This document shows, piece after piece, positions 3,001-64,000 of a DNA stretch of 64,000 nucleotides (its first letter is position 1; each line of letters opens with the position of its first letter). Position numbers and translations under genes: made by a program. The notes below the pieces were generated by a model, which ran no database searches, was not told where the DNA came from, and saw nothing but the letters and a program-made list of their open reading frames with translations. Source of the DNA: Bugula neritina (taxonomy: Eukaryota; Animalia; Bryozoa); assembly GCA_964035545.1 (NCBI GenBank), contig OZ037765.1, positions 3,410,001 through 3,474,000 on the forward strand, written 5' to 3'.

Positions 3001-6000
3001 ACATCTTGTGTTAACTCTTCACCATTATAATTCCTCACAGTTACTACTCTAGCATAGTGAGGTCGTTGTATATTCAGATTACTAATCACAGTCTCTCTGT
3101 AATCTATAGAAACTAATTTAGAGCTTATTATTGTGTTGAAGTTGGAGTTGTCTGAACATTCTATTTTAAAATGAGTAGTTGTGAGCTCCTGATTGGGTGT
3201 AGTAACTGGGAATTTCCATGTAATTCTGATTTCTTCTGGTGACACATCTGTGTGAGAAGATACTGGGTCTCCAGATAACTTAAAGATTTCTAAAAGTAAC
3301 AATCAGCAACTTAATTATTACACTCAACATCGGTTAACTAGTAAAAATGAAAATAATACAATTTTACCTTTTTACAATTATAGCAAACTACACTAAGTAT
3401 AGTTTAATGAGCATAAATATTATCTATATAAAATAATGGTTTATATAGATCTTATGACATTAATAAATTTAGTTTGCAGCAAAGATTTTAAACAAAGCTT
3501 GCATATAACAGCCTTTAAGTTTCAAATTTGAACCTATGAAGAGTACATCTCCAAAAGTATATACAAGTTTACACACAAAAAAACAAAACAGGTAGTTTTA
3601 TAATGCAGTTTTGTTAGTGTGGTAAACTCAGATTATAAAACAGTAGTCTAGTAAAACAAACAAAGTTTAATTTAAGTATAACAAATATTGTTATAGCCAG
3701 GACAGAATGTGATGTCATCATATTGCAATAGTAGATGGTAATAAATAAATATTATATGATCAAGAATAGCGATGCATGGTTTGATTTAAATACAAATAAA
3801 TAGCTAAACTTGTAGAAACCTACTGAATGGTGGTTATAATATTCAAGCAGATACGTGAAAACTTACTATCAGAATTTTCGCTAAACCTATACGGTTGAGG
3901 GAACAAATTAATATTTTCACATCTCCTTTGCTTAGCTAAGCTGATAATATAATTTTACACTTTGAGCAAAAAACAGTGCTTTCTTTTAAACATTCAGGTA
4001 AAAAATGGCTTCACCCTGTGAAATCTTTAATTTCAAACCTAAAGTAAAATAATATATAAGGTGAGCTAGTTTGAGCCTGATGCCTGCAGTTACAAACATG
4101 CCTGGGACATATTCTTGCAATATATATTTTGGTTTGTAGTTATTCTACAAGTTATAATAAAACAGAAAATTAAACAAGTAATTTATAAGCTATCGTGATA
4201 TAACAAATTATAGATATATGTGCCGCTGTGTGCCTATACAATGGATATTTAAGATCAAAACTTTAAGATGAGCAAATTCAAATACTATATTATATATACT
4301 ATATATATAGTTTTAGTGGCTCAACTTGCATTTAGTCACTGGCAGAACACATAATTGCAAAACTTTTTCCCTCACTGGGAATCCGACCTTAGATTTTTTT
4401 GACTTGCAAGCATGCGTGCAATGGCCAATTACACTTCTGGGATTCCTAATAACAATATTAAACTGGAAATGCTGTTTGTAAAATTGCATTTTCGGCAAAA
4501 CTATGCAATATATATGAATATTTAGTCGACAGAGATATTACTAACTGTTGAGAACACCAAGTTTGTTATGTGAATGTTTAGAGTTTTGATTATACGTGAA
4601 CTTAGCTTGCTTAATTGTAGGAAACAAAATTGTTGACTTTCTCAACTTTCAGCATAAATAAAAAACTCAAAGCTCTATACTCTGGTCTCACACGTTTCCA
4701 ACTTTCTCTCTTTCCCAACTGAGAACACAAGATTTGTTTCAATTTTCATGCCACTTGTGACTCAACCACCATACACATTTGCTGATTACGGATAACGGGC
4801 TCAAGTAGCTGTTAAAATTATGGGAAAAATATCAATCAAATTATACTTAAAAAAGCTTCAGGTTGTGCTGTGCACTTGTTATTGGTCAATAATCCACAGT
4901 TAATTGCACCAGTATAATATAATCACCTGCTATGTAGGCTCTCAGTGCTACTGCTCTAGTTTCTGTGACAACATCTGAAGCTGTGAGTCTGTCTACTCTG
5001 TCTGTTTTAGGGAAAATTATATAAGCTGGAGGATCTCCAACCACTTTAAATCTAAATGAGACGAGGTTACCTTTACAACCAGATTTACTCAAGTCTTCTA
5101 CATACAGAGCAAGAAAGTCTCCTTTTCTAACTACTTCTGTAGAGTTCTGTATAAACTGGAATCTGATTCCTCCTGTAGATGCATCTTCAGGTGTGAGTAG
5201 AGTTTCTGTAATCAGATTGAATACAGCAGAGTTACCTTCTCCTGTCTGTCTCCAGATAGCAGCATATGAGTCACAGTAGTCAGTAGAATGACCAATCATA
5301 TACTTCCAGCCAACTAAATATCCGTCTGCTTCTATCTTATAGTTGAAGAGTAACATGAGAGCAGTTCCAGCTGATCCATAATTTATTATCTTTGTGTTGG
5401 TTGTACTGTCAGAGTTATCTGAAATTAATAATATGGTATGCTTATAATAAAATTTATCATTTATCAGATATAGTGCAAATCACTTTTAATATAGGAATTT
5501 ACATGCCTGATTATCACGCTATTTAATTATCTCATATCAAATCATACTTTTTTTCTTTAAATGTGTTATATTAAAACAGTTAGTATCCTGGGTTCATCCT
5601 TAAACGTGTAGCTCAATGACCTTTTGTAATTAGCAACTTAAAGGTATATATAGAATGCAAATTACAGTATTTTGTTATATCAATTTAATTCGATGTTGCC
5701 ATGGTTCATAGGATATATTTATACTATTTATATTATGAGTTGTGCTCTCTAAAAAACTGATGACCCATTTCAGCTCAGCTGCACCTATACATTTACACTA
5801 TAACAAGTGTAATGCAATATATTGTTTGACAATATATCTCTCTGGTTTGAAAAGTGTAAAAATTATATATAGAATGCACACCAAACCTGCTACAACATGT
5901 TACTTTGAGTACATAAAAGTATATAAAAGAAGTATTGCAGTTCTCTGGTAATACCAATGGCTTCCAGCAAAGAATAAATGTATTTCGCACATTTCTTTGA

Positions 6001-7313
6001 TAAATGCGTTTTTATAACTGCATATGTTGAACAAGTAATAAAATAACCTCATTAGATAAATATTACATTTTACTAATCTATTGTATTTCATATTTGCTGC
6101 AAAGCACGTGCGTGGCAAATTTGCCCGCTATCAATAGCTTACATTTTGTTCTCTGAACACATGTATACGTTATAAATACTAAAGTTCTAACATGTTTTAA
6201 ATTCATTTTATGTTTCATACTTCAGATCCCTGAATGTGCATGATATATTAATATTAGAAAAAGACAATATCTATGCTTAAGAGTCTACATTGAGCCAAAG
6301 GACCCTATACCCTATTAACTGACAAAGAAGAAAGTGAATCAATGGATAATTTGTCTAGCAGAGAACTTACTATTAATGCTAAAGTTGCTAATGGTGATGA
6401 CAAACTTGCCTGAATATTGCTGGATTGAGGTGAACAAAATAACAGAACAAAACAAAACAACGTGCTTGGTTGTTGATAAGAATGCTGAAAAGTATTCACA
6501 GAATTACTTTAATCAGTTTAGTACCCTACCTAAGGGGACTGGCAGACCATCAAAGGTGATCGAATATGTTGGGACTTTACATAAGCTGGGAAAGCTTATT
6601 AGCTTTTCACATATCATCTCAGCTATATTATGCTTTTCCACTTTAATCATTATAGCTAATACACAAAAGCTAACTTTTTTACTATAGTACTTTTTTACTT
6701 ATAAGTACTATAAAAACCCAGCGGTTTTTCACTTATCCAGACTTGCAGTATTTCACACTTGTACTTGCAACTTATAACTCATAAGATAACTTACTTTTAC
6801 ACATCGATTTTTTTCAGTCTGCTATAATTATTATTTATTTCTCTAACTTAAAACACAACATGTTATGCAGAATAGAATATTATAATCTTGTGGAAATGCA
6901 AGATAACAAAAACATTTAATAGAAAAAGAGTATGACAAAATTTTCAGTTGTAATATTATAGGTCTCTGCTTGTGGCATGTAATTTTTCAATCTATACACT
7001 TCAATTTTGCTCAAAAATGCTTTCTCTTTTACTTTTTACATTTATATCATAATTAGGCTAATAGTTATATGCATTTGCACCCAATTTGATATCAGTTATT
7101 AGACATTTTATAATATTCGGCAAAATTTTGCTATATAAAAATTGACCAGGTTGCATACCATTAGTAATATTAGATTTGCAATAGCCTTGTTGTATACATA
7201 TAACTTGATATCAATTTGAAAATATGTAATACTTGTTTTTTATTTCAGCATGAAAATTTGTAATTTGCATGCGCTCAGTGCATCATGCATATATATGTAT
7301 ATATATATATATG

Positions 7314-7345
<32 letters not shown>

Positions 7346-7347
7346 AT

Positions 7348-7401
<54 letters not shown>

Positions 7402-11041: not shown

Positions 11042-11376
11042 TCAAGCTTTGTTGCTGATTGTTGGAGTATTTTCATAGCAGACATGTTCCGTCTGTTTAG
11101 TTACTTTCTCATAGACATGGTCATCTGATGTAGCCTGGAAACTTGTTGTCTCATACTCAGCACTTTGTACTGGTACATCTCGTGTACCACCCTGATTCTT
11201 AGAAGATGTAGGTGTCAGTCCCACTTCTTCATATTCAGTATTAGGCTGAGCTCTATTCTCTTCAGACTCAGTACCAGAAGATCTTCTCGCCAACATCACA
11301 ATAATAATCACTGCTTGTAAAATAATGATGAAACCCATTGGAACACCAACTGCTACTCCAACCACCCAGCCTGCTT
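11042..11376 (-). CDS. Copy 2 exon 12: transmembrane helix and Tyr-motif cytoplasmic tail
   Basis: WVVGVAVGVPMGFIIILQAVIIIVMLA followed by RR stop-transfer; tail contains YEEV, YETT, YEKV and YENT; TGA at 11042-11044. Confidence 0.9.
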
Positions 11377-14300
11377 CTAGAATAAAGATATGCATAAATT
11401 GTTGCTGGAAAAACTCTTTCTGTGTGCTAAGCTATAATCTCTCAAAGTAGGTTGCAAGCCTTTTATTAATGAAAAGCAGCGTTGCAGGCTTGCTGCTGCA
11501 ACTACTCAAAATATGAGTTTCTTCAAAATTTTCAACAACTGGGATAGTTATATATTTAAAAATAATTAGTTTACAATAACAGATAGTACTAACACATGTA
11601 CCTTTAGTTGGTAGTTCACAGGTAGGAGGATTGTCAGACCATTCTCCTTTACCATCTACTAGTTCACATGTGATGGCAACAGGACCTTTTCTTATGAACC
11701 CTTCTTTACAATCATAATTCAGAGTGGAACTCAGTTTCCAGCTTTTATCAACAACTGGTGTTTCAATATTTGCTACAGATTGTGGTGTTGAGCATGTGAT
11801 TGGTTGAACCACTGAAATGAAATAATGAAATTTTCGCAAAACTTTAAAAAGTTAAAAGGAATAACATATTTTGAGCTAAGAAAATATAGTTGCTGATTTT
11901 CAACTCACATCTTACAGACTCTGCACCAGGAATAGTGGTAACCTTCAAAACATCATCTTCAGTCTTAGCCTTGAATCCAACAGCAATGTGATATGAGTAT
12001 TGGTTGTCTAGAGGTCTGTTCCAGTAACCACCATATGTTTGGTTATCACCAACACTAAGTGAGGATGGATAGTTGGTAACCGGAAATGATGCTGTTATAT
12101 AAACAGTCACATTATTTATGCTATCAACAGTAATGGATCTCTTTTTCCTGGATGACAATTTTTCAACAACAATAACCATGGAGTCGTATCCTTTCAGAAT
12201 ATCATCAGATGAAGTGATGTTTGGTAGAGGTACTGTAATGGTTTCCCCTGATGGATTTACTGTATTATTGCCATCATTGCTGTATGTCAACACTGGCTCT
12301 AAAAAGCAATTACATTGTTTATTATATAGCAAGAGGAACTAAATATTTTTTGATTAGCCACGCTCTCTGAGTTTATATTTATTGCAAAGTTTTGTGAGTT
12401 TCAAGGTTTGAAGCTTCATGCCCTGAAATATTTTCAAAATAGTGTGAGTAAATATTTACTTACTTTCAGGTTTAGTCCAGAGCACAACTTCTCTAGAACT
12501 TTCTCCAAACTCATTTTCAGACAGAAGAGCTTTAACTGTACAGCTGTATTCTACTTGACTATAGAGTGATTCTATAGTTAGAGAGGTGGTAGAAGAGTCA
12601 GGTGTAATATTATAGTAACTCACTGAGTTTACTGTCACATTATCATTAAAGGTGTTGTTGGTTGTGATGCATGTTACCTGTAGCCAGTGATTAAAACAGT
12701 ATATAGCACAAATATCATTAACTTTTATGTATTTAATATTGTCATATTAAAAAATTCTCTGCTTAAACAAGCTGCAAAGAATATGCTAATTTTCTAATTC
12801 TAGGTTAATTTAAAACATAGTTGGATGTCAAAGGTATATTTATGTGTAAGAAATGATCGAGAGCTAGCCAGTTATCAACAAAACTTAGAGAGTTATTGAA
12901 AAAGAGAACAAAGTATGTATAAGTATGCCTAGTGACATGCAAAGTATAGAAGCAGACCTGCAGAAGTATAGCAAGTTGACTTGGCATCTAAAAACAAAAT
13001 TGAAGTTAAGCTGAAATTTTTCCTGTTTGACTTATTACTCACCTGATACTGTTGAATAGAGTAGATCTTATCTGTATAAACTACTGGATACCAGGAGATG
13101 GTAACTGAAGTAGAAGTTCTGGTGTCAACTGTCAGTCCATCTGGTGAGTTGGGTGCTGCAAAGTAAATATTATCATAGGAGATGATCACTTTTATTACTC
13201 AAAAACTTTGTTTGGTTACAAAATGTCTCAGCGCTGCCAAAAATTTTTCACCAGTATTTTGAAATTTTCAGTTTTACCCTTATTATATCCATATTTCAAC
13301 CCATGACTGCTTGATTGACTATTTTATTTTTATTATATGCAAATCTTTTAAAAGTTGCATTTATGTCTTCACTAACTATAATATAATCTTCATATAGTAA
13401 CCTAAACCCTAATTTATGTAAAAGAAAAATAAAATATTTGAAACTATTAAAGACCTATTAACTTTCAAATCTTTAAAACATCCAAACACATACACATATA
13501 GAATTATAGAAGCACGCATGTACACACATAAGCCCACTCACATGCACATTGCATGCAGGAGCAAAGTTATCTCCACACTTGCAATAACTTCTGCTCACCT
13601 TTACTAGCAGTGTATTCTTCTTGCCATATGACATTCTCATGTCCATCTTGTAAATTTACTTTAATAGTCAGTTCGAAGGTCACACCTTGCTGTTTAGTGA
13701 AAGTCCATGGTCCTGTTTTTATCTGATAGGATAATTGCCTACTTCCATAAGTTAATGTAACACTGGATATGCAGTCATCAGCTTCCTGTTACAGTGAAAG
13801 AGTTTAAATAATGTTAGGCTTACTTTAAGAAAATAGAAGCAGAATTAGTAGGTTGCTATGGCTTCAGAATAATCTCAACAGTGTGACTTTTGATTTAATT
13901 ATGAATTGAGTATGATTATTGAACAGACCTACCCAAGTAATTACACATAGCAATAGTAGTGTTTATAAGTAATTGCAGAAGTATACTCAAATATATTTTT
14001 TAACCTAATCCTAAAAGTGAAATATATATTAAATATAAACTTACAAGTGAAGGTACAAAATTTCACTCAATACAAATTATAAATTAATTCATTCACAATT
14101 AATAACCAGATTACATTGACACAGTAATAATAATGCTTGCATTATAAATAATTGCTGAAATACTATATACTCAAAATTTATTTTTAACTTAATCCTAATT
14201 TTAAAGTTACTGATGTATTTATATAGTTTAGGCTGTATAGGCGTAACCTTAACATATTATTGAACCCAATCATTGCTGAAAAGCAAAATAAGAAAAAAAG

Positions 14301-17300
14301 GAGTATAAACTCATTGCTGTATTTTTGAATGTAGAAACCTACTTTACTACATATAATATTATGGGTAACACTATGATATGATTCAAATTTTAATTACAAT
14401 ATTTATATTTTAAGTAAATCTACTCAAAATATAAATATCTCAACTATTTTTATAGTTTTAGAATAACCCAAGATGATATTATATTATAGTTCAAAATCAA
14501 TATGATCTAAAAGTATATAGATTATAGATAAAAATATAGACTTACAAGTGAAGGTACAGACACAGTAAATATTCTCTCTTCTCCTGGTTTCAGAATACCA
14601 CTTTCTGTTATTATAACATCTCCAGATGGTAATGTGCCTCTTTCTGTAGCATATAAAAAATATATTAATTAGTCAAAAATGTTTGTAACAGAAACAAATA
14701 CTTGAGATGCAAGGCCACCACTTTAACCTGCAAAAATTGTAGAAATACAGTTAACGATACTAATCTGCTTGTAGGTAAAAAATGTTTGAATAGTAATATA
14801 CCTGCACAGAAAAGAAAACTGACAGTAGAGGCATCTTGTATTAACTCTTCACCATTATAGTTCCTCACAGTAGATACTCTAGCATAGTAAGGTTGTTGTA
14901 TATTCAGATTACTAATCACAGTCTCTCTGTAGTCTATAGAAACTAATTTAGAGCTTATTATTGTGTTGAAGTTGGAATTGTCTGAACTTTCTATTTTAAA
15001 ATGAGTAGTTGTGAGCTCCTGATTGGATACAGTAGCTGGAAATTCCCATGTAATTCTGATTTCTCCTGGTGACACATCTGTGTGAGAAGATACTGGGTCT
15101 TCAGACAGCTTTAGAATTTCTAAAAAATTATCAAAATAAAAACATTTAAAGCATCATTTATTTCGGGTATAACTAATAAAATGAAAGTAATATGATTTTA
15201 TTCCTTTACAATTATAGCAAACTATATTTTGTATAGCTTATTGAATATAAATATTTTATATAAAACAATGGTTTATATAAAATTTTTGACAATATAATAA
15301 AGCCAGTTCATGGTGAAAGTTTTAGACAAAGCTTGCTTAACAGCCCATAAGTTTCAGATGGAAACTTAGAAAGTGCATCACGAATAGTATATATATGTAT
15401 ATAAGTTTACACGAAAGATACAAAAATTGAGGTTTGTGGTTTGCATTAACTTATAGTTGAGGTTTCATTTGATGTAACTATTTCCATTAGCCGAATGAAA
15501 AAATCTATTCCGAAAGCAATAATGGAGCCGATAATGGAAACGTAGTGTATATATCATAAAATAATACTATCATAATTAGTGCTGTCCTTGAAACCAAATG
15601 ACTATCAGAATTTTTTTTTCAACCTACACTGAGTTAAGAGAATAAAATATTTTCACAGATCTCCTTCTCTTAGCAAAACTGATAATACAAGTTTACATTT
15701 TGAAGAAACAGTGCTTATTTTTAAACATTTAGGTAAAAAGTTGTTTTACCTTGTGACTTTCAATAAATATAAAAGTGAAATAATCTTTAGGCGAGCTTTG
15801 AACCTGAGGCCTGCTGTTAAAAACATGCCTGGGATATATTTTTGCAATATATAGTTTGGTTTGTTGTATAGCCATTCTATACAATGTAGAATAATTATAA
15901 CAAAAAATTAAACAAGTAATTTGTAAGCTGTTGGGTACATAACAAATTATTCAAATTTGCACCATGCATTATCTATAATAGATCAAATGAGATCAAAACT
16001 GAAAAATGAGCAAATTCAAATACTACATACTATATATACCATATATAGTTTTACGGACTCACGCAGAACAACTTGCATTTAGTAACTGTGAGAACACATA
16101 ATAGTAAAACTTTTTCCTCCACTGGGATTCAGACCTTAGACCCCTGATTTGCAAGCAGGAGCGCTAGCAAATCCCACTACGGGGGCTTTGAGATTCCGGA
16201 CAACAATGACAAACGCAAAGTGCTGGTTGTAAAATTACACTTTCTACGAAACTAGGCAATATATAAATATTTAGTCTACTAAGATATTACAAATTACTGT
16301 TAAGAACACCGAGATTGCCATGTGAATGTTTAGACTTTAGACATTTTATTATGTAAATATAGCTTGGAAGTGATTCAGTTTACTTCATTTAGTACATGCA
16401 CATCGGCAAATTATGACCTAACATTAAAATTTGCTCAAAATTCATTGAAATTGACTATATGGTATATTTATGTTATGATTCTCATTATGCATAACATAAA
16501 AGCATTAAAGCATTAAAGCGCACGTCATTTTCATATAATGCACTTATTATTATGTATGTGCAACCGTTGAAACAAACCACAATGTCTGCAACTCCAAATT
16601 AGCTAAATAATTAGGAAAAACATGGGAAAATAAGCAAAATTAAAAATAACCTTGACTATTTATTGATATGTTATTAGTTTTAGGCAAAAACCCATATATA
16701 TTAGCAGCTAAAAAATAGCTAAAAACTGGAGATTTCGAGTGTGTACTAAATTAAGCAAAATGACCCAATTGCAGGAGGAGAAAATTTTTTTGACTTTCTC
16801 AACTTTCAGTATAAATTAGAAACCTGAAGCTGTACTCTGATCTCACACATTTCTATATCATCACTCTTTCTCAACTGACAACACAAAATTTGTTAACATC
16901 TTCATACCATTTGTAACTCAACCACCATACACATTTGCTGATTACAGATAATGAGCACAGGTATAGCTGCAAGATCTAGCGAGTAAAATATACACTAAAA
17001 TATACTTAAATTGCCACAGGTTTTGCTGTGCACTCGTTGTTGGTCAACAATCTATGGCTTCTTAATGCACCAGTGCATTGTAATCACCTGCTATGTAGGC
17101 TCTCAGTGCTACTCCTCTGTTTTGTATGACAACATTTGAATATGTGAGTCTGTCTACTCTCTCTCCGTTAAGAAAAGGTAGACTTATATAAGCCTCGGGA
17201 TCTGCTGACATATGTGGTCTAAATGAGACGAGGTTACCTTTACAACCAGAAGTACTCAAGTCTTCTACATACAGAGCAAGAAAGTCTCCTTTTCTAACTA

Positions 17301-20300
17301 CTTCTGTAGAGTTCTGTACAAACTGGAATCTGATTCCTCCCGTAGATACATCTTCAGGTGTGAGTAGAGTTTCTGTAATCAGATTGAATACAGCAGAGTT
17401 ACCTTCTCCTGTCTGTCTCCAGATAGCAGCATATGAGTCACAGTAGTCAGTATAATGACCAATCATATACTTCCAGCCAACTAAATATCCGTCTGCTTCT
17501 ATCTTGTAATTGAAGAGTAACATGAAAGCTACTCCAGCTGATCCATAATTTATTATCTTTGTGTTGGTTGTACTGTCAGAGTTATCTGAAAATAATAATA
17601 TGTTATTCCTAAGATATAATATCACATTTATCAGGTAATGCAAACTACTTTTAATATAGGAATTTAAATGCTTATTCATCACACTATTTAACTATCCCAT
17701 TATATAAAATCCTACTTTTTTCTATAAATTTTTTCTTCTGGCATATTAATTGTGTAAGATGGCTGGCAGGGGGGGGGGTGAAGGTTTGACACAGTTTGAT
17801 CTCAACGAAGAGATTACCCAAACATACTTTAATCACCAAAAGGACCTGGCAGATCACCATTTTACTAAACATGCATAGGGTGATGAAATATAACACTAAC
17901 TTGTGCAAAAACAAGAGAGCCAAAAGATTTTCTGGAGAAAATGTAAAAAAAAGCCTTTCATTCAATGTAGAAAATTTAATATAAGTCTCAGCTCATCATG
18001 TGGTCTTTGGTTTTATACCAAATATTAATGTGATCTTTGATATCATATCAAATAATGATGTGGTACTCTGTGCTCTAGCATGCTGATGAACAATGCTTTT
18101 GTTACTTTTTACATATAAGTCAGATTTATGAAAATATGTATTTAAACTGACTTTGATATTACTTAGACAGTTGGTAGGTCATGCAATGGTTTAACTGTTT
18201 GTTTTAGTTATATATCAGTATTAAAAAGTATATATATATATATCATTGTTAATCTTAAAGACTAGCAGCGGCCTGAAATTAAAGTATATTTTTTCAATAA
18301 ATCTCGTTTCTTTCAACATAAAAATTTGTACTGCTCAGTTATAGTACATATAAGTAGTACATATTTCATGTTGATTCAAATTATTAGAGCTCTCATGCAA
18401 GTGAGTAGGGCTTTGCTAATAGCAATTAAGAAATAATTGCCAATATTTACTTGCTTCTATAATAACTACAAATAATTTCTTTGTTTTTTTAGCTTCGAAA
18501 AATATACAAGAAGCAGCTGTAACAGCTGTATCTATTCCAGCAACTGAACATAGCCTATTTGCACACTAGCTATAGTCTAAAAATTTAGTTTGTAATCAAT
18601 AAATTTCACCCATACCTGCATACCAGAGAGGGAGGTTGAAGTACTGATAGTCTGGATGTTTTTCTGGTGTCACTCCAGCTTCATCTGATCTTTTGTTGAC
18701 AATCTCACATTGATCTCCACTAATTGACTTCACTATAGAACTACAGTTATCACTGATGTCTTCATCTTGTAAACAGAAACTCATACAGTCTCTGAGGTCT
18801 GATGTACTTATCTGGCTGTACTTTTGTACCCTATTGTTTAAAAAGTTGCCCCTATTAGCTGTCCATGGCTGCCATATTCCTATTGGAAAAGAAAATACGT
18901 GTACATAGTGGAGCTACTCAATAGTTTTAACCACCAGATTTTTTAATTTCTTGATAATTTAATAACAGATAATAATTATTAGACAAAGTTGTTTAATTAT
19001 AGCTTTAAGATCACATCACCTCTCAAGTAACATAAGAATTAAGAAATGATGATCTATCAATATGATGAACAAGATATGAAGAATAAAAAGCTTTTGCATT
19101 ATTCAATAAATTTAGATTGAGAGGCTATCTATAGCTCATAACTAAAACTAAATTATCAAAACTAAATATTGAGAAATTGTTATGAAATCTTCCTCTGAAT
19201 AATTAAGTCATAATCCAGCTATCACTTTTTGTTTACAATATATATAAGTTATATACATAACTGCCCAAACATACGTTGACAACGCTGACAGTATAACAGC
19301 AAATGCGAGCCATTTTTAAAAACATCCTGTCTGGCTTGAACCAGAGGAAGGTAGAGGTTATACTGAGGATCAAACACTGCTCAATTTAAAACATTACCCC
19401 CCCCCCTCCCTACTATTGGAGGAAAAGATGGCATTCTCAAAGTCAGTTATTGGGCAAATAAAACCAACCTATAGCATAATGTTTAACTGCAGCTAAACTA
19501 ACAAACTTCCATATTCATGAAGTTGATAAGAAGTTATAATATTATATAAGTTATATAAGTAGTTAGGTTACAGTTGAACTTTCAATCTGTACTCTAAAAC
19601 AATTAATTGCACTTTTTACAGATAATCTATATAATATAATTTTTTTAAAACAAATTTTTATGCAACAGGCTGTCATGATAATAGATTCATAACATTTTTG
19701 GATACCTGGCTATACATACTTGTCAAACATTTGCAAAAAATAAAGTCACATGCAATGCATGCATCCATTGAAATTGGTTGCTGAATGTTGCATCTTTTTT
19801 CACTGTTTACTTAATTGAAATGCTTTTAGAATTAGATTGAATTAGATTGACACTGTCAGAACTGGCACTAAGTTCTAAATCCTGCCCTGTTTTTGATTAT
19901 TCATGAAGGCCAAAATATCATAATGTCTGGTTTGTGTTAAGCCGGAGTTAACAGTAGCATATTCAAAGAGCACTTTCAGTTGGTTATTACTGTCAATACT
20001 AACTGTAAGTATGTACATCATAAATAATAATCATGTAGTGTTAGATTATCATAAATACTCACCAGCACAGTCTGGTCTAACAGAGTATCTCCACTGACTA
20101 TCAGAACTACTAGTAGTAGCAGTCTGAGTATTCTCTGCTAACAGCTGACAGTTTCCATCACCAGTTCTGTAGTTTATTGAGGCACATATAAATGATGTCT
20201 GCTGCATACACTGAGCTCTACACTCATCTTCACTGATTATAAAAAGAGTCTTTATACTACCAGATGCTATGTAAGGTTCTAGTCTACCCACACCTGATGT

Positions 20301-20606
20301 CCAGTCACAGGTTAGTCCTGTAAATATGCAGCAGGGAAAAACTAACAACATACTAACTTTGTAAAGATATTTAGAACAACAAGAGTTTACTATGGGTCTA
20401 TACAATTGAGAATTTGTGCTGCTATAATAATTGCATCAATGTGTACAATTTCTATCCATATGCTACAAATAATGGTCATAAAAAACTTAATTGAGTACAT
20501 GATATAAACAATACTATATATCTAACATACCTTGTACTGGTGCAGAGATAGACGCAGTAACTAGAAAGAAGCACAAGTGAAAACACAAGTACAGTATTCT
20601 CTTCAT
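11042..20606 (-). CDS. Receptor copy 2, intact, ~985 aa type I membrane protein (PAN x2, variable domain, FN3 x3, RPTP-type membrane-proximal domain, Sushi, TM, Tyr-motif tail)
   Basis: Exons 20531-20606, 20063-20317, 18616-18879, 17088-17585, 14802-15119, 14546-14643, 13599-13785, 13043-13155, 12464-12677, 11909-12298, 11602-11811, 11042-11376. All GT-AG and phase-compatible; total 2958 nt with no internal stop found. Confidence 0.9.
11602..11811 (-). CDS. Copy 2 exon 11: Sushi/CCP domain
   Basis: CSTP...YDCKEGF..KG...ITC...GEWSDNPPTC: four-Cys plus Trp CCP signature. Confidence 0.92.
11909..12298 (-). CDS. Copy 2 exon 10: receptor-PTP-type membrane-proximal FN3-like domain with RKKR furin site
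   Basis: IVVEKLSSRKKR|S...YITASFP...LSVGDNQTYGGYWNRPL...Y resembles the cleaved membrane-proximal domain of R2-type receptor tyrosine phosphatases and SUSD1 (Y-x-AA...F-x-VGDN-x-TY-x-G-[YF]WN-x-PL). Confidence 0.8.
12464..13155 (-). CDS. Copy 2 exons 8-9 (13043-13155, 12464-12677): fibronectin type III domain
   Basis: APNSPDGLTVDTRTSTSVTISW...LTIESLYSQVEYSCTVKA...GESS...WTKP: canonical FN3. Confidence 0.9.
13599..14643 (-). CDS. Copy 2 exons 6-7 (14546-14643, 13599-13785): degenerate FN3/Ig-like beta domain
   Basis: 98-nt and ~187-nt exons are conserved and open in all six copies and joined by a phase-0 intron. Alternating hydrophobic strands (VTFELTIKV). Domain identity tentative. Confidence 0.65.
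14802..15119 (-). CDS. Copy 2 exon 5: fibronectin type III domain
   Basis: IRITWEFP...FKIE...TVISNLNIQQPYYARVSTV: FN3 W, L and Y signature. Confidence 0.85.
16372..16766. mobile_element. Degenerate MITE, same family as 50089-50514
   Basis: Right end ...GTGTGTACTAAATTAAGCAAAATGACCC matches the 50-kb element; the left end is degenerate (GATTCAGTTTACTTCATTTAGTACA). Flanks AAGT/AATT. Absent at the paralogous site in other copies. Confidence 0.7.
17088..17585 (-). CDS. Copy 2 exon 4: beta-rich domain of uncertain family carrying the hypervariable loop
   Basis: GYLVGWKY...YAAIWRQ...VVRKGDFLALY...VALRAY. Phase 1-1 exon, open in all copies. The fold (possibly C1q/TNF-like jelly roll) is inference only. 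Confidence 0.8.
18616..18879 (-). CDS. Copy 2 exon 3: PAN/Apple-like domain 2
   Basis: DLRDCMSFCLQDEDISDNCSSIVKSISGDQCEI...YQYF: PAN-type four-Cys spacing. Confidence 0.75.
20063..20317 (-). CDS. Copy 2 exon 2: PAN/Apple domain 1
   Basis: SEDECRAQCMQQTSFICASINY...GNCQL matches the PAN pattern C-x3-C...C-x-S-x2-Y...C-x-L. Confidence 0.85.
20531..20606 (-). CDS. Copy 2 exon 1: signal peptide
   Basis: MKRILYLCFHLCFFLVTASISAPVQ, then donor G|GTATGT. The same 76-nt exon is present in five copies. Not in the ORF track (too short). Confidence 0.85.
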
Positions 20607-40339: not shown

Positions 40340-40386
<47 letters not shown>

Positions 40387-43246
40387 ATATAACTATATAA
40401 TAGTAATCATTTCTGACTTTTATTACATACTACTCTTGACGGTTGCAACACACTACTTATCACCAAGCTGGATGATAGTTCAAAATTTTAAGTCTGTATT
40501 TTTGGAAAATTGATCAAATTGATGATAGATGCTGTAAATTGTTGCAAAATAAATAACCAGCAAATATTCAAAAATATCTTCGCAAATATTAATATATACT
40601 AAACTCACAATTAAGCTTTAAACTTGATAGGAAGTCATCATTTAGAAAAAAAATTTTACGGACAATAACAAAAAATTAACCAGTTAGTTTGAGTACGAGT
40701 AAAATTTACACAAAAACATACCTAAAATAGCTAAAGTGTGTGCTTTGCTTGTAAACAACAATCTATAGATTATTGCACTATAAGTGTAATATAATCACCG
40801 GCTATGTAGGCTCTCAGTGCTACTTCTCTAGTTTGTGTGACAACATCTGAAGCTGTGAGTCTGTCTACTCTGTCTCTGCTATCGAAAGGCCTACGTATGT
40901 AAGCTGAAGGATCTTTAGTCCCACCTGGTCGAAATGAGACAAGGTTACCTTTACAACCAGAGTTAGTCAAGTCTTCTACATACAGAGCAAGAAAGTCTCC
41001 TTTTCTAACTACTTCTGCAGTGTTCTGTACAAACTGGAATCTGATTCCTCCTGTAGATACATCTTCAGGTGTGAGTAGAGTTTCTGTAATCAGATTGAAT
41101 ACAACAGAGTTATCTTCTCCTGTCTGTCTCCAGATAGCAGCATATGAGTCACAGTAGTCAGTATAATGACCAATCATATACTTCCAGCCAACTAAATATC
41201 CGTCTGCTTCTATGTTATAATTAAAGAGTAACATGAAAGCACCTCCAGCTGATCCATAATTTATTATCTTTGTGTTGGTTTTACTGTCAGAGTTATCTGA
41301 AAATAATAATATGTTATTCATAAAAAATAAAATATATCTTATTTATCAGATATAGTGCAAACAACTTTTAATATAGAAATTTACATTATTAGTTATGTCC
41401 CACTATAATTCAATCTAAATAAATGTGTTATATTGAAATGGTTATTAAACGCTGAGTTTATCTTCAAGTGTTAATCAACTTAGTAATTTGAAAGGCTTAT
41501 AGGACGCAAATTACAGTGTTTTGTTTCACTAGTTTAAGATATTAATGTTACCATGATACATATAGGATATATTTATACTATTTATATTAGGAGTTGTGCT
41601 CTCTAGAAAAGTGATGAGCTCAGTGTAATGTAATATTGTCTGATACATCTCTCTAGTTTGAAAAGTGTAAAAAGTATATTGAGAATGCATACCAAACCTG
41701 CTACAACATGTTTATTGGAGTACAGCCTTTTAAACCTGCCAGTATGTGCTTCTCTGTTACTTTGCATATAAAATAAGTATTAAGCAGTTCTTTGGTAATA
41801 CCATGCAATAGCTCCCAGCAAAGAATATGTGGATTTCGCACATTTCTTTAATAAATTCGTTTTTATAACTGCATAAATTGAACAAGTAGTAAACTAACCT
41901 CATTGTAGTTAAATTTTATCTTTTCCCAATATATCGTTTTTCTGCATATCATTAATTTATATTTTATATTTATATTTAATATATATTAAATGTGTCTTCT
42001 ACCAATAGCACAATGTTTGTCTGAACATATACTTTTCGAATACCAAAGTTCTAGCATGCTTTAATTCCATTTTATGTTTAATACTTCAGATCCCTATGAA
42101 TGCGCATAATACTTTAGCTATATAATTAAAAAAAGACAATATATTATATCTAGGTAAAGGTTTACATTGACTCGAATGACCCTAGCCTATGTTGACTGAC
42201 AAGGACGACAGTGGAATTATAGCTAATTTGTCTAGCAGAGAATTGACTATAAGCAATGCTGAACTTGCTTCCCGTAACCTTCATTTAACTTAAGGAAATG
42301 GTGAGACTCACCTGATTACTGCCGGAATGTAATGAACAAAATAATAAAACAAAGCAAAAACACAATGTGTGGATGTTGCAAAGGAGGGCTGAAAAAATTT
42401 CACAGAGATACCCAAATCAGTTCAGTAAGGGCGCTGGCAGACTATCAGAAGGTGATGCAGAAATAGAATATTATCTTGTGAAAACACATGATAACAAAAG
42501 CATTTACTGGAGAAGGAGTTATAAAAACATTGTTCAGTCAGCATAAAAAATGTAGTATAAGTCTCTGAGTTTCACTCATACCTGAATACCAGAGAGAGAG
42601 ATTAAAGTACTGAGAGTATGTATGTTTTTCTGGTGTCACTCTAGGATCATAAATACTCACCAGCACAGTTTGGTCTAACAGAGTATCTCTACTGACTATC
42701 AGAACTACTAATAGTGGCAGTCTGAGTATTCTCTGCTAACAGTTGACAGTTTCTATCATCAGTTCTGTAGCTTATTGAGGCACATATGAATGATGTCTGC
42801 TGCATACACTGAACTCTACACTCATCTTCACTGGATACATAGAGAGTCTTTATATTACCAGATGTTATGTAAAGATCTAGTCTACCCACACCTGATTTCC
42901 AGTCACAGGTTAATCCTGAAAATATGCATATGATGCTATTGCCATATTTTATTCAGGTTATATAATGTTAGCTGGAAAGTTTTACGACTTAATACTAACT
43001 TTGTAAAGCTTTTTAGAATAGCAAGAGTTTACTATGGGTTTATACATTTGAGAGCTTGTATTGCTATAATAATTGCATCAATGTGTACAATTTCTATGTA
43101 TATGCTACAAATAATGGTTATAAAAAACTTAATAGATTACATTATATAAACAATATTATATCTAACATACCTTGTACTGGTGCAGAGATAGACACAGTAA
43201 CTAGAAAGAACCACAAGTGAAAACACAAGTACAGTATTCTGTCCAT
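36682..43246 (-). pseudogene. Receptor copy 4, pseudogene
   Basis: Lesions: TGG>TAG in exon 2 (42689-42691); deletion of intron 2 and most of exon 3 (remnant ~42582-42642); AAA>TAA in exon 10 (37888-37890); 2-nt insertion giving TAG inside the TM (36951-36953). Exons: 43171-43246, 42661-42915, 40799-41296, 39889-40206, 39652-39749, 39134-39317, 38625-38737, 38153-38363, 37605-37988, 37239-37448, 36682-37012. Confidence 0.9.
40339..40379. repeat. (TA)n microsatellite in intron 4 of copy 4
   Basis: ~40 bp TA run. Confidence 0.9.
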
Positions 43247-50514: not shown

Positions 50515-53500
50515 ATATAAGGAAAGCTTTGAACCTGACGCCTGCAATTAAAAACATGCCTAGGATTTATTTTTGCAATATATTATATTTTGGTTGGTAG
50601 TCATTCTACAAGTTACAATGTAACAAAAAATTAAACAAGTAATTTATAAGCTACCAAGTATATAACAAATTATTCAACTTTGTACCACCATATTTACCTA
50701 TAATAGATAAAGTGAGATCAACAGTTGATGAGCAAAGTCAAATATTCAAATACTATATAATATATATACTTTATAGTTTTACTGGCTAAGAGAGAAAAAC
50801 TTACATTTAGTCACTGTCAAAACACATAATTGTAAAACTTTCTTCCCTCTCTCACTAGGATACGAACTTTATAGACCTTCGACTTGCTTAATCAGGAGCG
50901 CTAGCAAGTTACACATCACGGATTCCAAACAACAATAAAGTTCTGACTGTAAAATTGCACTTTCCACAAAACTATGCCATATATAAATATTCAGTTCATC
51001 AACATATTACTTATAGAGTTGTTATGGAACACCAAGTTTGCTATGGGAATGATTAGAGTTTTGGTTATGCGAATGTAGCTCGTAAGTGTAGGAGAAAAAT
51101 CGTTGACTTTCTAAACTTTCAGCATAAATAAAAAAGTTTAAACTCTACTTTGGCCTCACACATTTCTATATCACCCTTTCCCAACTGACGACACAAAATT
51201 TACTTCCAATTTCATACTAGTTGCGACTCAATCTCTATGCACATTTGCTGATTACAGATAATGAGCACAAGTAGCTGTAAGATCTAGCGAATAAAATATA
51301 CACCAAAATATACTTGAAATGGCCACAGATTGTGCTGTGCACTTGTTATTGGTCAATAATATATGGCTCATTGCACCAGTGTATGATAATCACCTGCTAT
51401 GTAGGCTCTCAGTGCTACTCCTCTATGTTCTTGTCTAACACTTGAAGACGTGAGTCTGTCTAATCTGTTTTTGTTATGATTAGCTGGATTACGTATATAA
51501 GCTTCAGGATCAACACCTGACAGACTTGGTCTAAATGAGACGAGGTTACCTTTACAACCAGAGCTACTCAAGTCTTCTACATACAGAGCAAGAAAGTCTC
51601 CTTTTCTAACTACTTCTGTAGAGTTCTGTACAAACTGGAATCTGATTCCTCCTGTAGATGCATATTCAGGTGTGAGTAGAGTTTCTGTAATCAGATTGAA
51701 TACAGAAAAGTTACCTTCTCCTGTCTGTCTCCAGATAGCAGCATATGAGTCACAGTAGTCAGTAGAACGACCAATCATATACTTCCAGCCAACTAAATAT
51801 CCGTCTGCTTCTATCTTGTAGTTGAAGAGTAACATGAAAGCATATCCAGCTGATCCATAATTTATTATCTTTGTGTTGGTTGCACTGTCAGAGTTATCTG
51901 AAAAACATAATATGTTATTCCTAAAATGGAATATCACCTTTATCAGGTATATAGTGCAAACCATTTTAATATAAAAATTTACATGCCTGATTATCAGGCT
52001 ATTTAATTATCTCATTACATCAAACCATACATTTTCCTATAAATGTGTTATAATAAAACATTTAGTATGCTGGGTTCATCCTTAAACGTGTAGCTCAATA
52101 ACTTTTTAGACTTAGAATTTTAAAGGTTTATAGCATGCAAATTGCAGTATGTTATTATATCAGTTTAATTCAATGTTACCATGGTACATAGGATATATTT
52201 ATGTTATATCTATTATGAGTTGTGCTCTCTAGAAAAGTGATGAACTCATTTCAGCTCAGCTGCACCTATACATTCACACTATAACCAGTGTAATGAAATA
52301 TTAATTTATATATATATCTCTGGTTTGAAAAAGTATATTGAGGATGCACGCAAAACCTGCAACAACATGTTCATTTGTGTCCAGCTTTTCAAACCTTCCA
52401 GCATGTGCTTTGCTGTCACTTTGCAACGAAGTATTACTGCATGTTCTTTCACAACAGCTTAGAGAAAGTGCATATTTTGCACATTTCTTTGATAAATGCT
52501 TTTTTATAACTTCATTATATACTGTGAAATTAATAAACTAATCTCATTTTAGTTGAATTTCACATTTTCTAATCTATTGTATTTTTGCATATCATTTCAT
52601 ATTTGCTGTAACGTATGTAGCAAATGTGCCTTCTGCCAATAGCACAATTTTTCTCTGTGCCTTCTATCTTAGCAATAGCGTACATTTTGTTCTCTATGCA
52701 CACATTTACTTTATAAATACTAAAGTTCTAGCATGTTTCAATTTTATTTTATGTTTAAAACTTCAGATCCCAGAATGCACATAATATATTATCTATATAT
52801 TAGAAAAAACCATATTTTATTTATGTAAAATGTTTACATTGAGCCAAATGACTCTGGCCTATAGTGACTGACAAAGACGTCAGTGGATTGATAGATAATT
52901 TGTCTATAGCAGACAACTGACTAGCAATGCTGAAGTTGCTTTCCATAACCTTCGTATAACTCAAGGTGATGGTGAAACTCACCTGAGTATACTGCTGGAT
53001 TGTAGTGAACAAAACAACAAAACAAAACAAAAACAAAATTGCCTGGTCGTTGCATAAGAAAGCTGAAAAGATTTCACAGAGATACCCAAATTAGTTCAGT
53101 ACACTACCTAAGGGAGCTGACAGACTATCAGAAGGTGATGGAATAGAATATTATCTTGTGGAAACACAATTGAAAACAAAAGTATTTACTGAAGAAGGAG
53201 GTATGAAAACATTTTTCAGTCAGCATAGAAAATGTACTGTATGCCTCTGCCTGGCATGTAATTTTTCATTTCATAACTAATAATGATGTTGTGCTCTGCC
53301 CACTTCCATTTTGACTGATAATGTTTTCTTTTTTACATTTTACATGCAAATCGTAATTAAGATAACATATATGCATTTGCACCCAATTTAATATTAATTA
53401 GACATTTTATAGTATTTAGAGAAATTTTGCTAACATTATTGACAAGGTTGCATATCATTGGTAAGTTTAGATTTGCAATAGCCTAAAATTGTTGTATACT

Positions 53501-63700: not shown

Positions 63701-64000
63701 TCAATAATCTACAGTTAATTGCACAAGTATAATATAATCACCTGCTATGTAGGCTCTCAGTGCTACTGCTCTAGTTTCTGTGACAACATCTGAAGCTGTG
63801 AGTCTGTCTACTCTGTCTGTTTTAGGGAAAATTATATAAGCTGGAGGATCTCCAACCACTTTAAATCTAAATGAGACGAGGTTACCTCTACAACCAGATT
63901 TACTCAAGTCTTCTACATACAGAGCAAGAAAGTCTCCTTTTCTAACTACTTCTGTAGAGTTCTGTACAAACTGGAATCTGATTCCTCCTGTAGATGCATC
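57769..64000 (-). CDS. Receptor copy 6 (5' part outside window) with deletion-truncated cytoplasmic tail
   Basis: Exons 63742->64000, 61781-62098, 61438-61535, 60669-60855, 60158-60270 (weak donor CAA|GTTGGT), 59579-59789, 59021-59404, 58641-58850, 57769-57992. All visible exons are open; the tail ends SAEYE* at a deletion junction. Confidence 0.78.
58193..58612. repeat. 17-bp minisatellite (GTAGACTGACACATACA)n, ~24 units, intron 11 of copy 6
   Basis: Highly homogeneous tandem units; the source of the spurious 17-aa-periodic Cys-rich ORFs. Confidence 0.95.
60866..61040. repeat. Probable small interspersed repeat fragment, related in reverse orientation to ~15450-15555
   Basis: CACTACGTTTTCATTATC and CGGCTCCATTA at ~60875-60973 match the reverse complement of TAATGGAGCCGATAATGGAAACGTAGTG at ~15521-15547. 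Neither is present at paralogous intron sites. Confidence 0.4.

Follow-up and report, generated by a model that had tools for sequence, protein, structure and literature searches.

A clustered receptor family in Bugula neritina with hypervariable loops in a predicted jelly-roll domain

We find that the 64,000-nucleotide stretch of Bugula neritina chromosome 1 analysed here (the window) carries six tandem genes on the minus strand, each with a copy of an exon, exon 4, in which a hypervariable loop sits in an otherwise near-invariant sequence. The original prediction had described this pattern for the window, and it holds across 33 genomic copies. The explanation that we favour, with moderate confidence, is a germline multigene family of surface receptors that cross the membrane once, with exon 4 encoding the domain that probably gives them their specificity. 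From the N-terminus, such a receptor would consist of a signal peptide, two PAN domains, the jelly-roll domain encoded by exon 4, FN3-type domains that include a PTPRU-like juxtamembrane FN3 with an RKKR motif, and a membrane anchor.

Six tandem genes and their variable exon

All six GNLVSFR anchors lie on the minus strand, with their first bases at window positions 63886, 51550, 40949, 28287, 17238 and 5071. The exon 4 copies around them are:

4927..5418, minus strand: exon 4 copy 1 (locus L006), 492 nt; loop 5000-5050; second variable patch 4952-4981
17088..17585, minus strand: exon 4 copy 2, 498 nt; loop 17161-17217; second variable patch 17113-17142; target of the AF2 model
28128..28634, minus strand: exon 4 copy 3, 507 nt; loop 28201-28266; patch 28153-28182
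40799..41296, minus strand: exon 4 copy 4, 498 nt; loop 40872-40928; patch 40824-40853; gene decayed
51394..51897, minus strand: exon 4 copy 5, 504 nt; loop 51467-51529; patch 51419-51448
63742..64000, minus strand: exon 4 copy 6 (locus L012), clipped at the window end; full exon to 64233, 492 nt; loop 63815-63865; patch 63767-63796

As the earlier reading had it, exon lengths differ by whole codons only (492, 498, 507, 498, 504 and 492 nt for copies 1 to 6). The splice sites are conserved (acceptor ...ttttcAG/AT AAC, donor ...GCAG/GTGATT, the slash marking the junction) and are in phase 1 at both ends. The loop peptides of all window copies match the earlier reading exactly, and its loop coordinates are right for five copies and one base off for copy 4 (40872-40928, not 40871-40927). 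Four smaller variable spots that it named, SAG[x]A, the G[H/R] turn, the DL.. turn and the TETRA/IQNRG spot, are also real. Its statement that only DPxA is kept in the loop is true within the window; across the family, an NPNRD-type ending is also common to many loops. Copies 1 and 6 have identical loops because they occupy equivalent positions in a ~59 kb five-gene higher-order duplication, and their flanking introns are 2 % different. The copy just before the window, L003, pairs likewise with copy 5 (introns 2-3 % apart, ~59 kb spacing).

The exons surrounding exon 4 were mapped in gene 2:

20061..20317, minus strand: PAN/apple domain 1 exon (Pfam PAN_1, E=2.9e-9; acceptor tttacAG/GA at 20318/20317)
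18620..18880, minus strand: PAN/apple domain 2 exon (tblastn against Watersipora XP_067947407.1; PAN_1 match on the copy-1 equivalent)
11910..15120, minus strand: FN3/Ig-like exons (14803-15120, 14549-14653, 13525-13788, 13013-13156)
11910-12290, minus strand: Fn3_PTPRU-like exon with the RKKR motif inside
11600-11800, minus strand: sushi exon (Pfam Sushi)
11045-11395, minus strand: TM and cytoplasmic-tail exon with four conserved tyrosines (YEEV, YETT, VYEKV, CYENT)

Pfam matches in window exons comprise PAN_1, fn3, Fn3_PTPRU (E=1.9e-9) and Sushi. Given the acceptor at 20318/20317, a separate signal-peptide exon is expected upstream of PAN1, which fits the numbering of the variable exon as exon 4. 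Of the six genes in the window, two or more appear to be damaged: that of copy 4 has a stop in PAN1, a mostly deleted PAN2 and a stop in its Fn3_PTPRU-like exon, and that of copy 6 has two stops in its tail exon. Among public runs, covered as contigs, none contained more than a third of exon 4's sampled words. RNA-type contigs, from two RNA-looking runs, map to exons and to one intronic repeat but not to the remaining introns. One connects PAN1 (20062) to PAN2 (18878) of gene 2, and others cover 17253-17589 of copy 2 and then break at the variable region.

Predicted fold and signalling classes

Exon 4 encodes a beta jelly-roll of ~165 aa, modelled by AF2 from 72 sequences with a pLDDT of 89.5 and a pTM of 0.86. 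The best structural matches by VIA-align are a Bxb1 tail-tip domain (Z 10.2), a cyanophage capsid protein (Z 9.2) and the lectin-like domain of Cwp84 (Z 7.9), and comparisons with CBM32, F-lectin, discoidin and PHR domains gave Z of about 5. A language-model search independently returned Lectin_like and PHR. Judged by the model, the domain is a jelly-roll of the galactose-binding/CBM-lectin type. Its placement came from VIA-align, as Foldseek against the PDB found nothing at E<=1e-3. A PDB profile search with the domain was blank and Pfam assigned no family to any of the 72 exon-4 members, as single copies or all aligned; sequence homology to galactose-binding-like families is therefore undetectable by Pfam or PDB profiles. 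The likeness to CBM32, F-type lectins, discoidin and the Cwp84 domain is one of general beta-jelly-roll class (Z 5-10), and sugar binding by the Bugula domain is putative. We also considered a MAM domain and rejected it, as there was no MAM entry among the top 50 structural matches and no Pfam MAM match.

Most of the variable spots fall in inter-strand loops of the AF2 model, but the patch after RVDRLT is part of a strand. The proposal that variation marks a ligand-binding surface draws support from this placement and from the lectin-like beta-sandwich, a fold class that usually binds through loops. Variable loops at one end of the domain hold the ligand in F-lectins and discoidin domains, and those of F-lectins were named CDRs. 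The exon-4 loops may determine specificity for a glycan or a cell-surface partner. A homodimer prediction for the domain scored 0.00, a 'no answer' that is evidence in neither direction.

The window holds a small part of the family. At least 33 exon-4 copies occur genome-wide in three blocks; contig 1 has 33 close copies, from 2.81 to 4.22 Mb, spanning 1.4 Mb in two orientations, and contig 2 has one more. Tail exons follow 23-24 of the copies and PTP exons follow nine. The tail-type class (~24 genes), to which all six window genes belong, has a short tail with the four conserved tyrosines and a sushi domain before the TM segment. The phosphatase-type class, nine genes at 3.95-4.23 Mb, 0.5-0.8 Mb off, carries the same ectodomain on two tyrosine-phosphatase domains. 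In a GenBank record, KAF6029364.1 'Ptprm [Bugula neritina]', the exon-4 domain precedes FN3s, a TM segment and a pair of PTP domains. PAN1 lies upstream of exon 4 in both classes, and the exon-4 domain is 76-87 % identical across them, with the contig 2 copy and L033 scoring lower. Measured against the ITIM/ITAM consensus as quoted in PMC9546547, canonical motifs are absent from the tails: YEEV, YETT, VYEKV and CYENT fit neither [ILVS]xYxx[ILV] nor Yxx[IL]x6-9Yxx[IL].

As expected of paired receptors, near-identical ectodomains are joined to different signalling modules within one cluster, and some variable segments of one class recur, unchanged or in similar form, in the other. Putative ligand binding would then be read out by phosphotyrosine signalling, with tail-type and phosphatase-type receptors that have similar loops acting as opposing partners.

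Divergence, selection and exchange in the variable segments

The variable segments comprise a main loop of 17-22 aa, a 10-aa patch after RVDRLT, the DLSxSGCxG turn and single residues. Over the 33 copies, diversity at codon positions 1, 2 and 3 is 0.04/0.03/0.05 in the core versus 0.56/0.57/0.44 in the first loop half. The jelly-roll core hardly varies, synonymous sites included. The other exons of the gene have pS of 0.12-0.25 and omega of 0.27-0.73, so that the gene's least and most variable coding segments are both found in exon 4. Mismatch in intron HSPs is ~0.12, against a core pS of ~0.09, and the low synonymous divergence of the core could mean that the family is young and its introns turn over indels fast, instead of pointing to homogenisation.

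The earlier reading had also judged the loop, by eye, to be more diverged than alignable intron, and this is borne out in every window pair but 1/6 (loop p-distance 0.27-0.53 versus intron 0.06-0.32). In a multiple alignment of the 3.5 kb loci the introns were mostly unalignable, and as the pairwise aligner is lenient, giving p=0.28 even on shuffled introns, only pairs well below that value were kept. In most young paralogue pairs the loop is 2-4 times as diverged as its flanking introns, and the excess is significant in most pairs, though not all (for example 17/63 versus 0.077, P=3.5e-6).

Diversifying selection, which the original prediction had proposed for the loop, is a separate matter. 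M2a is preferred over M1a with an LRT of 331, flagging the loop and 19 sites in all, under the assumption of uniform dS and one tree. Once the synonymous rate is free to vary, the main-loop omega is no longer above 1: it is 0.70 by ML and 0.95 by NG86, with 1.2 for sub-loop L1 and 0.8-1.0 for L2. Synonymous divergence in the main loop is as high as nonsynonymous (omega 0.7-1.2), and its three codon positions are about equally diverse. Five comparisons with orthologues from a second lineage agree, with omega of 0.76 in the loop and 0.75 in the patch and with a loop pN close to intron divergence, roughly the neutral expectation.

Elsewhere in the exon the signal is stronger. The patch after RVDRLT, which includes the TETRA/IQNRG spot, has an omega of 2.2 (LRT p=0.004; NG86 2.16, CI 1.4-3.8), and its codon positions 1 and 2 are 2.7 times as diverse as position 3. 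The IGHxT turn has a pS of 0 (p=0.01), and several hot codons keep a fixed third base while coding for 5-7 amino acids. A FEL-like test found nine sites with beta>alpha at p<0.05 (best 8.6e-5; copy-2 residues 152, 79, 11, 125, 148, 18, 62, 43 and 157), SAG[x]A and G[H/R] included. Five young pairs show nonsynonymous and synonymous differences of 61:13 in variable regions versus 28:21 elsewhere (Fisher p=0.004); in the three youngest, nonsynonymous divergence of the variable regions is ~2 times intron divergence (P=0.004). The codon likelihoods come from our own fixed-tree models on a GTR+G tree, the tested regions were picked after their variability was seen, and mosaic data violate single-tree models. 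Collectively, these results support positive selection on amino-acid replacements at the second patch and some single sites but do not show it for the main loop, and selection for diversity in the receptor loops is only partly shown.

Relaxed constraint alone is the chief rival reading. A tolerant, indel-prone surface segment may simply drift near-neutrally in a birth-and-death family whose core is kept by purifying selection, with no role in specificity, and we regard this as a serious possibility, if clearly the less probable one. The loop omega of 0.70-0.95, the equal diversity of its codon positions and the near-neutral orthologue values are what such drift would give. The main-loop region is also the unalignable, indel-rich part of the exon in distant homologues, and pseudogenes of the family are present in both B. 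neritina lineages. However, drift without import of sequence cannot produce a loop that stands 2-4 fold above flanking introns in young pairs. The reading frame is kept in 33 of 33 copies despite many indels, the sole in-frame stop (in L024) lying outside the loop. The codon-position bias and omega of the patch, the hot codons with a fixed third base, and the youngest pairs, with ~21.5 nonsynonymous to ~1.5 synonymous changes in their variable regions, likewise argue against drift alone.

The variable segments have largely unrelated histories. Correlations between segments are close to absent (Mantel r ~0-0.16), and 27 % of informative site pairs fail the four-gamete condition, whatever their distance. 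The nearest neighbour of a gene agrees over all three variable segments in only 7/32 genes, and 41/96 nearest-neighbour relations cross signalling class. For example, L011 (phosphatase type) and L005 (tail type) have patches that differ at 0/30 nt and loop halves that differ at 7/33 and 7/24, L006 and L018 differ at 1/30 in the patch and at 19/33 in the first loop half, and the first loop half of copy 3 is closest to that of a phosphatase-type paralogue, L013. A PHI-like four-gamete test was not significant, incompatibility being equally high at all distances. A GENECONV-like run test gave many 'significant' pairs but is confounded by the clustering of variable sites, and we do not use it as evidence of exchange.

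These patterns, in which the variable segments are combined independently of one another, among paralogues and between the two signalling classes, are consistent with cassette exchange, which better explains the excess of loop over intron divergence. Specifically, the variable segments would be old, paralogue-specific variants that short-tract exchange, through gene conversion or unequal recombination, re-sorts among paralogues of both signalling classes. Such exchange would account for loops more diverged than introns in young duplicates, for the high synonymous divergence of the loop and for the uncorrelated histories of the segments. Convergent change could mimic it by producing shared motifs.

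The loop had been called CDR-like, a term that is apt only as an analogy, the loops being germline-encoded and specific to each paralogue; nothing in the germline assemblies and contigs points to somatic diversification. In a true CDR analogue, somatic or targeted germline hypermutation would leave the copies as snapshots of a mutating site, and both the raised synonymous and nonsynonymous change in the loop and the breaking of other individuals' contigs at the variable region could be read in that way. However, such breaks are expected from de Bruijn assembly of 33 paralogues, and each variant belongs to a complete gene of its own, where it is fixed in the germline. Recent duplicates (copies 1/6; L003/copy 5) have identical or nearly identical loops, and in the two closest orthologue pairs the loops are almost unchanged while introns differ by 4.5-7 % between lineages. 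We consider hypermutation very improbable.

Equally improbable is an assembly artefact, in which haplotypes that were collapsed or wrongly joined, or a scaffold segment present twice, pass for paralogues. The introns of copies 1/6 and of L003/copy 5, 2-3 % apart at ~59 kb spacing, could come from a haplotype assembled in tandem. The remaining copies, by contrast, differ in indels, loop sequence and gene integrity, the 33 copies extend over 1.4 Mb in two orientations, and an independent JGI sample has at least ten further members on their own contigs with matching exon structure. Finally, the tandem, phase-symmetric repetition of the variable exon recalls Dscam- or protocadherin-like cassettes, alternative exons of one large gene with shared constant exons, but we dismiss this arrangement because the PAN, FN3, sushi, TM and tail exons are all repeated in each unit, where an in-frame stop follows the tail, and the RNA-type contig joins PAN1 to PAN2 inside one unit.

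Relation to known receptor systems and meaning

Vertebrate paired receptors (KIR, LILR, Ly49, SIRP, CD300) form clustered families in which nearly the same ectodomain is placed on opposing outputs. They evolve by birth and death with pseudogenes and exchange between paralogues, and they vary at ligand-contact loops. The Bugula family resembles them in its clustering, in its near-identical ectodomain on tail-type and phosphatase-type outputs, in its birth-and-death evolution with pseudogenes, in the apparent exchange between paralogues and in variation concentrated at putative ligand-contact loops. It differs in that the opposing output is an intrinsic tandem phosphatase rather than a phosphatase-recruiting ITIM, and in that the ectodomain is PAN-PAN-jelly-roll-FN3 rather than Ig or C-type lectin.

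Type IIB RPTPs (PTPRM/K/T/U) share with the family a juxtamembrane FN3 that matches Fn3_PTPRU, with RKKR at the place where those enzymes are cleaved. They also share two PTP domains with nine Bugula paralogues, and the GenBank record bears the automatic name 'Ptprm'. Of these features, Fn3_PTPRU and RKKR are present in the window genes, while PTP domains occur only in the nine paralogues and KAF6029364.1 and in 0/6 window genes. Unlike type IIB RPTPs, the family has PAN-PAN and the jelly-roll at its N-terminus without MAM or Ig, is massively expanded in tandem and consists mostly of members without a phosphatase. Pfam found no MAM or Ig match in window exons or in KAF6029364.1 as annotated, a record that starts at the exon-4 domain.

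Bryozoans are colonial animals with a capacity for allorecognition (PMC9546547). In another colonial invertebrate, Hydractinia, the Alr complex likewise comprises many clustered genes for single-pass receptors, in which each domain has its own exon, the tails carry tyrosine motifs and the membrane-distal domains vary; pseudogenes are numerous (PMC9546547). Unlike the Bugula domain, the variable Alr domains are Ig-like, and no phosphatase-fused partners are described for Alr; moreover, Alr genes are genetically proven allodeterminants with hundreds of alleles (PMC9546547), a role that is hypothetical for the Bugula family. Our literature search found no paper on this exon-4 receptor family or on bryozoan recognition genes.

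The site-model test that the original prediction had proposed also carries a warning about methods, as its very strong M1a/M2a signal (LRT 331) largely vanishes for the loop given dS variation, orthologue comparisons and mosaicism. Loop differences between genes may be the family's way of telling targets apart. More speculatively, and as an idea that we hold to be unlikely though worth stating, the 1.4 Mb cluster could be a self/non-self recognition complex, serving recognition of colony or larval kin or the sensing of symbionts or pathogens. The exon-4 loops would supply its specificity, loop cassettes would be shuffled among ~33 genes, and tail and phosphatase receptors with matched loops would read one ligand with opposite sign. 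If true, the phylum, for which we found no recognition genes in the literature, would have a system of the histocompatibility type that uses a new lectin-like domain. With its big receptor family, new putative binding domain, defined variable loops and paired tyrosine-tail and phosphatase outputs, the cluster is a concrete candidate, and the loops named here are the obvious places for studies of allelic diversity, binding swaps and fusion or kin settlement.

Variability of exon 4 in the window and across the family

The window is AT-rich (GC 31.7 %). It spans about five and a half units of 9-14 kb each, arranged head to tail, and the GNLVSFR anchor of exon 4 occurs in it six times, all on the minus strand. 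When we re-read the sequence, the peptides between GNLVSFR and R[VL]DRLT, here called the main loop, were identical to those originally read in all six copies, and the loop coordinates were correct except in copy 4, where they were shifted by one base. The exon 4 splice sites are conserved (acceptor ttttcAG/AT AAC, donor GCAG/GTGATT; phase 1 at both ends), with exon lengths of 492/498/507/498/504/492 nt in copies 1-6. Copies 1 and 6, whose flanking introns are 2 % different, have the same loop since they occupy equivalent places in a five-gene duplication of ~59 kb; L003, the copy just upstream of the window, matches copy 5 likewise. Within this block, window 4927-5418 pairs with 63742-64000 and L003 with 51394-51897, and introns are 2-3 % different. 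The duplication could be a real recent segmental event or a haplotype assembled in tandem.

Close exon 4 copies number at least 33 in the genome:

Contig 1, 2.81-2.89 Mb: tail-type block, six copies
Contig 1, 3.25-3.47 Mb: tail-type block that includes the window at 3,410,001-3,474,000, seventeen copies
3.95-4.22 Mb: phosphatase-type block, nine copies, with tyrosine-phosphatase domains in the downstream exons, replacing the short tail
Contig 2: one copy

PAN1 exons lie upstream of tail-type and phosphatase-type copies alike, and on this exon order we read the family as one ectodomain that would be wired to two outputs. The hypervariable loop in a near-invariant exon, proposed from the window alone, is real and extends family-wide:

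Diversity in 31 intact paralogues (codon-position diversity for positions 1/2/3)
Core: pN 0.046, pS 0.090; codon-position diversity 0.04/0.03/0.05
Main loop: pN 0.34, pS 0.36; codon-position diversity 0.56/0.57/0.44 in the first half and 0.31/0.39/0.33 in the second

Many four- and six-fold codons for conserved residues are uniform in all 31 copies. In the window genes, the remaining exons show pS 0.12-0.25 and omega 0.27-0.73; the gene's extremes of coding conservation and coding variability thus both lie in exon 4. The impression, first gained by eye, that the loop is more divergent than alignable intron was borne out where introns align, as the excess is significant in most pairs with intron p<0.17 (in one pair, loop 17/63 vs intron 0.077, P=3.5e-6; in one, 27/51 vs 0.142, P=8e-11). 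Introns are a poor family-wide yardstick; about half of the pairs have no alignable intron within 1.4 kb, and a lenient aligner yields p=0.28 on shuffled sequence too.

Selection and the histories of the variable segments

The answer on diversifying selection varies with the test used. In our own PAML-style implementation on a fixed tree, which assumes a single synonymous rate and a single tree, the M1a/M2a comparison gave an LRT of 331 and assigned omega 5.6 to 12 % of sites, and M2a flagged 19 sites, most of the main loop among them. Once a separate synonymous rate was allowed, the main loop had alpha 3.65, beta 2.55 and omega 0.70 (1.2 in the first half, 0.8-1.0 in the second). A FEL-like test found nine sites, of which only residue 125 lies within the main loop:

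Sites with beta>alpha at p<0.05 in the FEL-like test (copy-2 residues)
152: p 8.6e-5
79: p 0.0025
11: p 0.0037
125: p 0.0067
148: p 0.010
18: p 0.020
62: p 0.026
43: p 0.042
157: p 0.043

The 10-codon patch after RVDRLT, which is the TETRA/IQNRG spot of the original prediction, has omega 2.2 (LRT p=0.004) and an NG86 value of 2.16 (bootstrap CI 1.4-3.8). Diversity at codon positions 1/2/3 of the patch is 0.35/0.38/0.14, and several hot codons have a fixed third base yet encode 5-7 amino acids. Across five independent young pairs, nonsynonymous to synonymous changes stand at 61:13 in the variable regions vs 28:21 elsewhere (Fisher p=0.004 for this contrast). Taken by themselves, the variable regions have a ratio of 1.38, not significantly >1. 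Their count is about 21.5:1.5 (binomial p 0.02-0.07) when only the three youngest pairs are considered, and in these pairs their nonsynonymous divergence is about twice that of introns (P=0.004).

Another B. neritina lineage, represented by JGI sample 3300002729, yielded 18 related exon 4 ORFs, one with a loop identical to a copy here and most without a close match. Five orthologous comparisons, assigned by flanking introns (intron mismatch 0.045-0.175), gave pooled loop values of pN 0.148, pS 0.195 and omega 0.76, with 0.75 for the patch and 0.47 for the core; in the two closest pairs the loops are nearly unchanged. Positive selection is reasonably supported at the small patch and at some single sites. 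For the main loop, diversifying selection is not shown. Of the two signs originally named as speaking against it, one was seen there (dN/dS at or below 1) and the other was not: loop divergence is higher than that of local intron.

Distances measured in the two loop halves, in the patch and in the core show essentially no correlation with one another (Mantel r about 0-0.16), and 27 % of informative site pairs, at any spacing, fail the four-gamete test. Individual pairs differ in which segment they share:

Nucleotide differences by segment
L011 (phosphatase type, 4.09 Mb) vs L005 (tail type, 2.84 Mb): patch 0/30, loop halves 7/33 and 7/24
Copy 1 vs copy 3: patch 1/30, first loop half 19/33
Copy 1 vs L021, another paralogue: first loop half 2/33, patch 8/30

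For the first loop half of copy 3, the nearest sequence is that of phosphatase-type L013. The nearest neighbour stays the same across all three variable segments in only 7 of 32 genes, essentially recent duplicates, and 41 of 96 nearest-neighbour relations cross signalling classes. Exchange of short cassettes between paralogues would account for the loop's high synonymous divergence, for a loop divergence above intron level in young pairs and for the independent histories of the segments. This exchange, suggested by the mosaic pattern, is not proven; among the exon 4 paralogues a PHI-like test was flat and a GENECONV-like test confounded. Convergent change in short motifs is a possible alternative. 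The core's very low synonymous diversity is in line with homogenisation, and also with a young family whose introns turn over rapidly. The GenBank protein KAF6029364.1 (P0054) departs at four core positions (Q57R, E60T, S63P and V95L, copy-2 numbering) where 28-29 of 29 own-genome copies agree with each other (alignment A2), which weakly hints at concerted evolution within the lineage.

Predicted fold and gene architecture

None of the 72 family members matched a Pfam family, and a profile search gave no PDB sequence match. AF2 produced a poor model from paralogues alone (pLDDT 64) and, with distant homologues added, an all-beta sandwich (pLDDT 89.5, pTM 0.86). Foldseek returned no significant structural match. 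Exhaustive VIA-align comparison gave Z 10.2 to a Bxb1 tail-tip protein domain, 9.2 to a cyanophage capsid protein, 7.9 to the Cwp84 lectin-like domain, about 7 to carbohydrate-esterase modules and about 5 to CBM32, F-lectins, discoidin, PHR and SUN domains; independently, a language-model search listed Lectin_like and PHR. The predicted exon 4 domain is therefore a galactose-binding-domain-like jelly-roll, and the MAM domain suggested by the name 'Ptprm' is rejected on this fold. Variable spots fall mostly outside strands:

Variable residues in the model
18: before strand 21-28
43-44: turn 42-46
79: loop 74-83
108-115: loop 107-115
123-141 (main loop): two loops flanking strand 130-134
148-157 (patch): enters strand 151-158, the exception

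Searching 1.84 billion protein representatives with a profile gave only 53 relatives, which include KAF6029364.1, 'Ptprm [Bugula neritina]', and an uncharacterised protein of Watersipora subatra. On these hits, the sponge (Porifera) origin hinted at by Atlas labels was rejected. Read exon by exon rather than from one joined spliced protein, each unit encodes PAN (E=2.9e-9), PAN, the exon 4 domain, FN3/Ig-like exons, a Fn3_PTPRU-like FN3 (E=1.9e-9), sushi, TM and a tail of ~75 aa. As the PAN1 exon starts at a good acceptor, a separate signal-peptide exon is expected upstream, which fits the numbering 'exon 4'. Four tail tyrosines are kept in all window copies (YEEV, YETT, VYEKV, CYENT), none in a canonical ITAM or ITIM, and HVYEK is common even to Watersipora. 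The Fn3_PTPRU-like FN3 carries RKKR (window 11910-12290), also in tail-type receptors without phosphatase; furin cuts type IIB receptor phosphatases at the corresponding place. L036, a distant homologue at 37 % identity from a metagenome contig of ENA assembly ERZ27296354, likewise has a PAN-domain ORF upstream of its domain exon, at a distance of ~1 kb, so this combination of PAN and jelly-roll predates Bugula.

Signs of transcription, gene decay and the proposed germline repertoire

Expression evidence came from assembled contigs of sequencing runs over the gene 2 region, which give presence, not level. In two RNA-looking runs, contigs cover exons only, apart from a dispersed intronic repeat:

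14547-14646, 14802-15121, 17253-17589, 18616-18878, 20062-20265: gene 2 exons covered
16250-16850: dispersed repeat, intron after exon 4 of gene 2

One contig links 18878 straight to 20062, the PAN1-PAN2 splice. In the run that matches introns without difference, probably the assembly's own individual, exon depth far exceeds intron depth. Contigs end at 17253 or 17218, the edge of the variable part, as expected because 33 paralogues share the core. The repeat has 10-100x the contig depth of adjoining exons in all four runs, and many contigs continue into unrelated sequence at 16711 and 16767.

Several members are broken, and the window also holds local repeats:

36685-42928: gene 4, whole decayed unit, ~2-3 kb shorter than adjoining units
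42659-42928: gene 4 PAN1, contains a stop
42586-42639: gene 4 PAN2 remnant, last ~18 codons only
37606-37980: gene 4 Fn3_PTPRU-like exon, contains a stop
57757-58014: gene 6 tail exon, two stops
45764-46284 (gene 5) and 58074-58628 (gene 6): 17-nt tandem-repeat arrays, intron between sushi and TM/tail exons, not seen at the equivalent position in other units
33659-34089 (gene 3) and 7190-7472 (gene 1): short-period arrays, 8-14 nt, upstream of PAN1 exons

Gene 4, whose tail exon lacks the TM part, looks decayed from its sequence; its exon 4 is still intact, with a unique loop. For gene 6, the nearest PAN1 upstream of exon 4 is ~10 kb off (contig 1:3484494), vs the usual ~3 kb. Paralogue L024 has an in-frame stop. 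Two of the orthologues compared from the second lineage are broken, L040 by a stop and L037 by a ~19-codon deletion, and their respective counterparts here, L029 and L031, are intact, indicating lineage-specific loss of family members.

Nothing in the germline data favours somatic diversification. The label 'CDR-like' can stand only by analogy with F-lectins and similar modules, whose binding sites are built on loops and to which the exon 4 loops, known here from sequence and predicted fold, may be likened. Selection for change is detectable at some positions. We read the family best as a germline repertoire in which a conserved lectin-like scaffold carries paralogue-specific loops, and these loops appear to have been re-assorted between genes, tail-type and phosphatase-type included.
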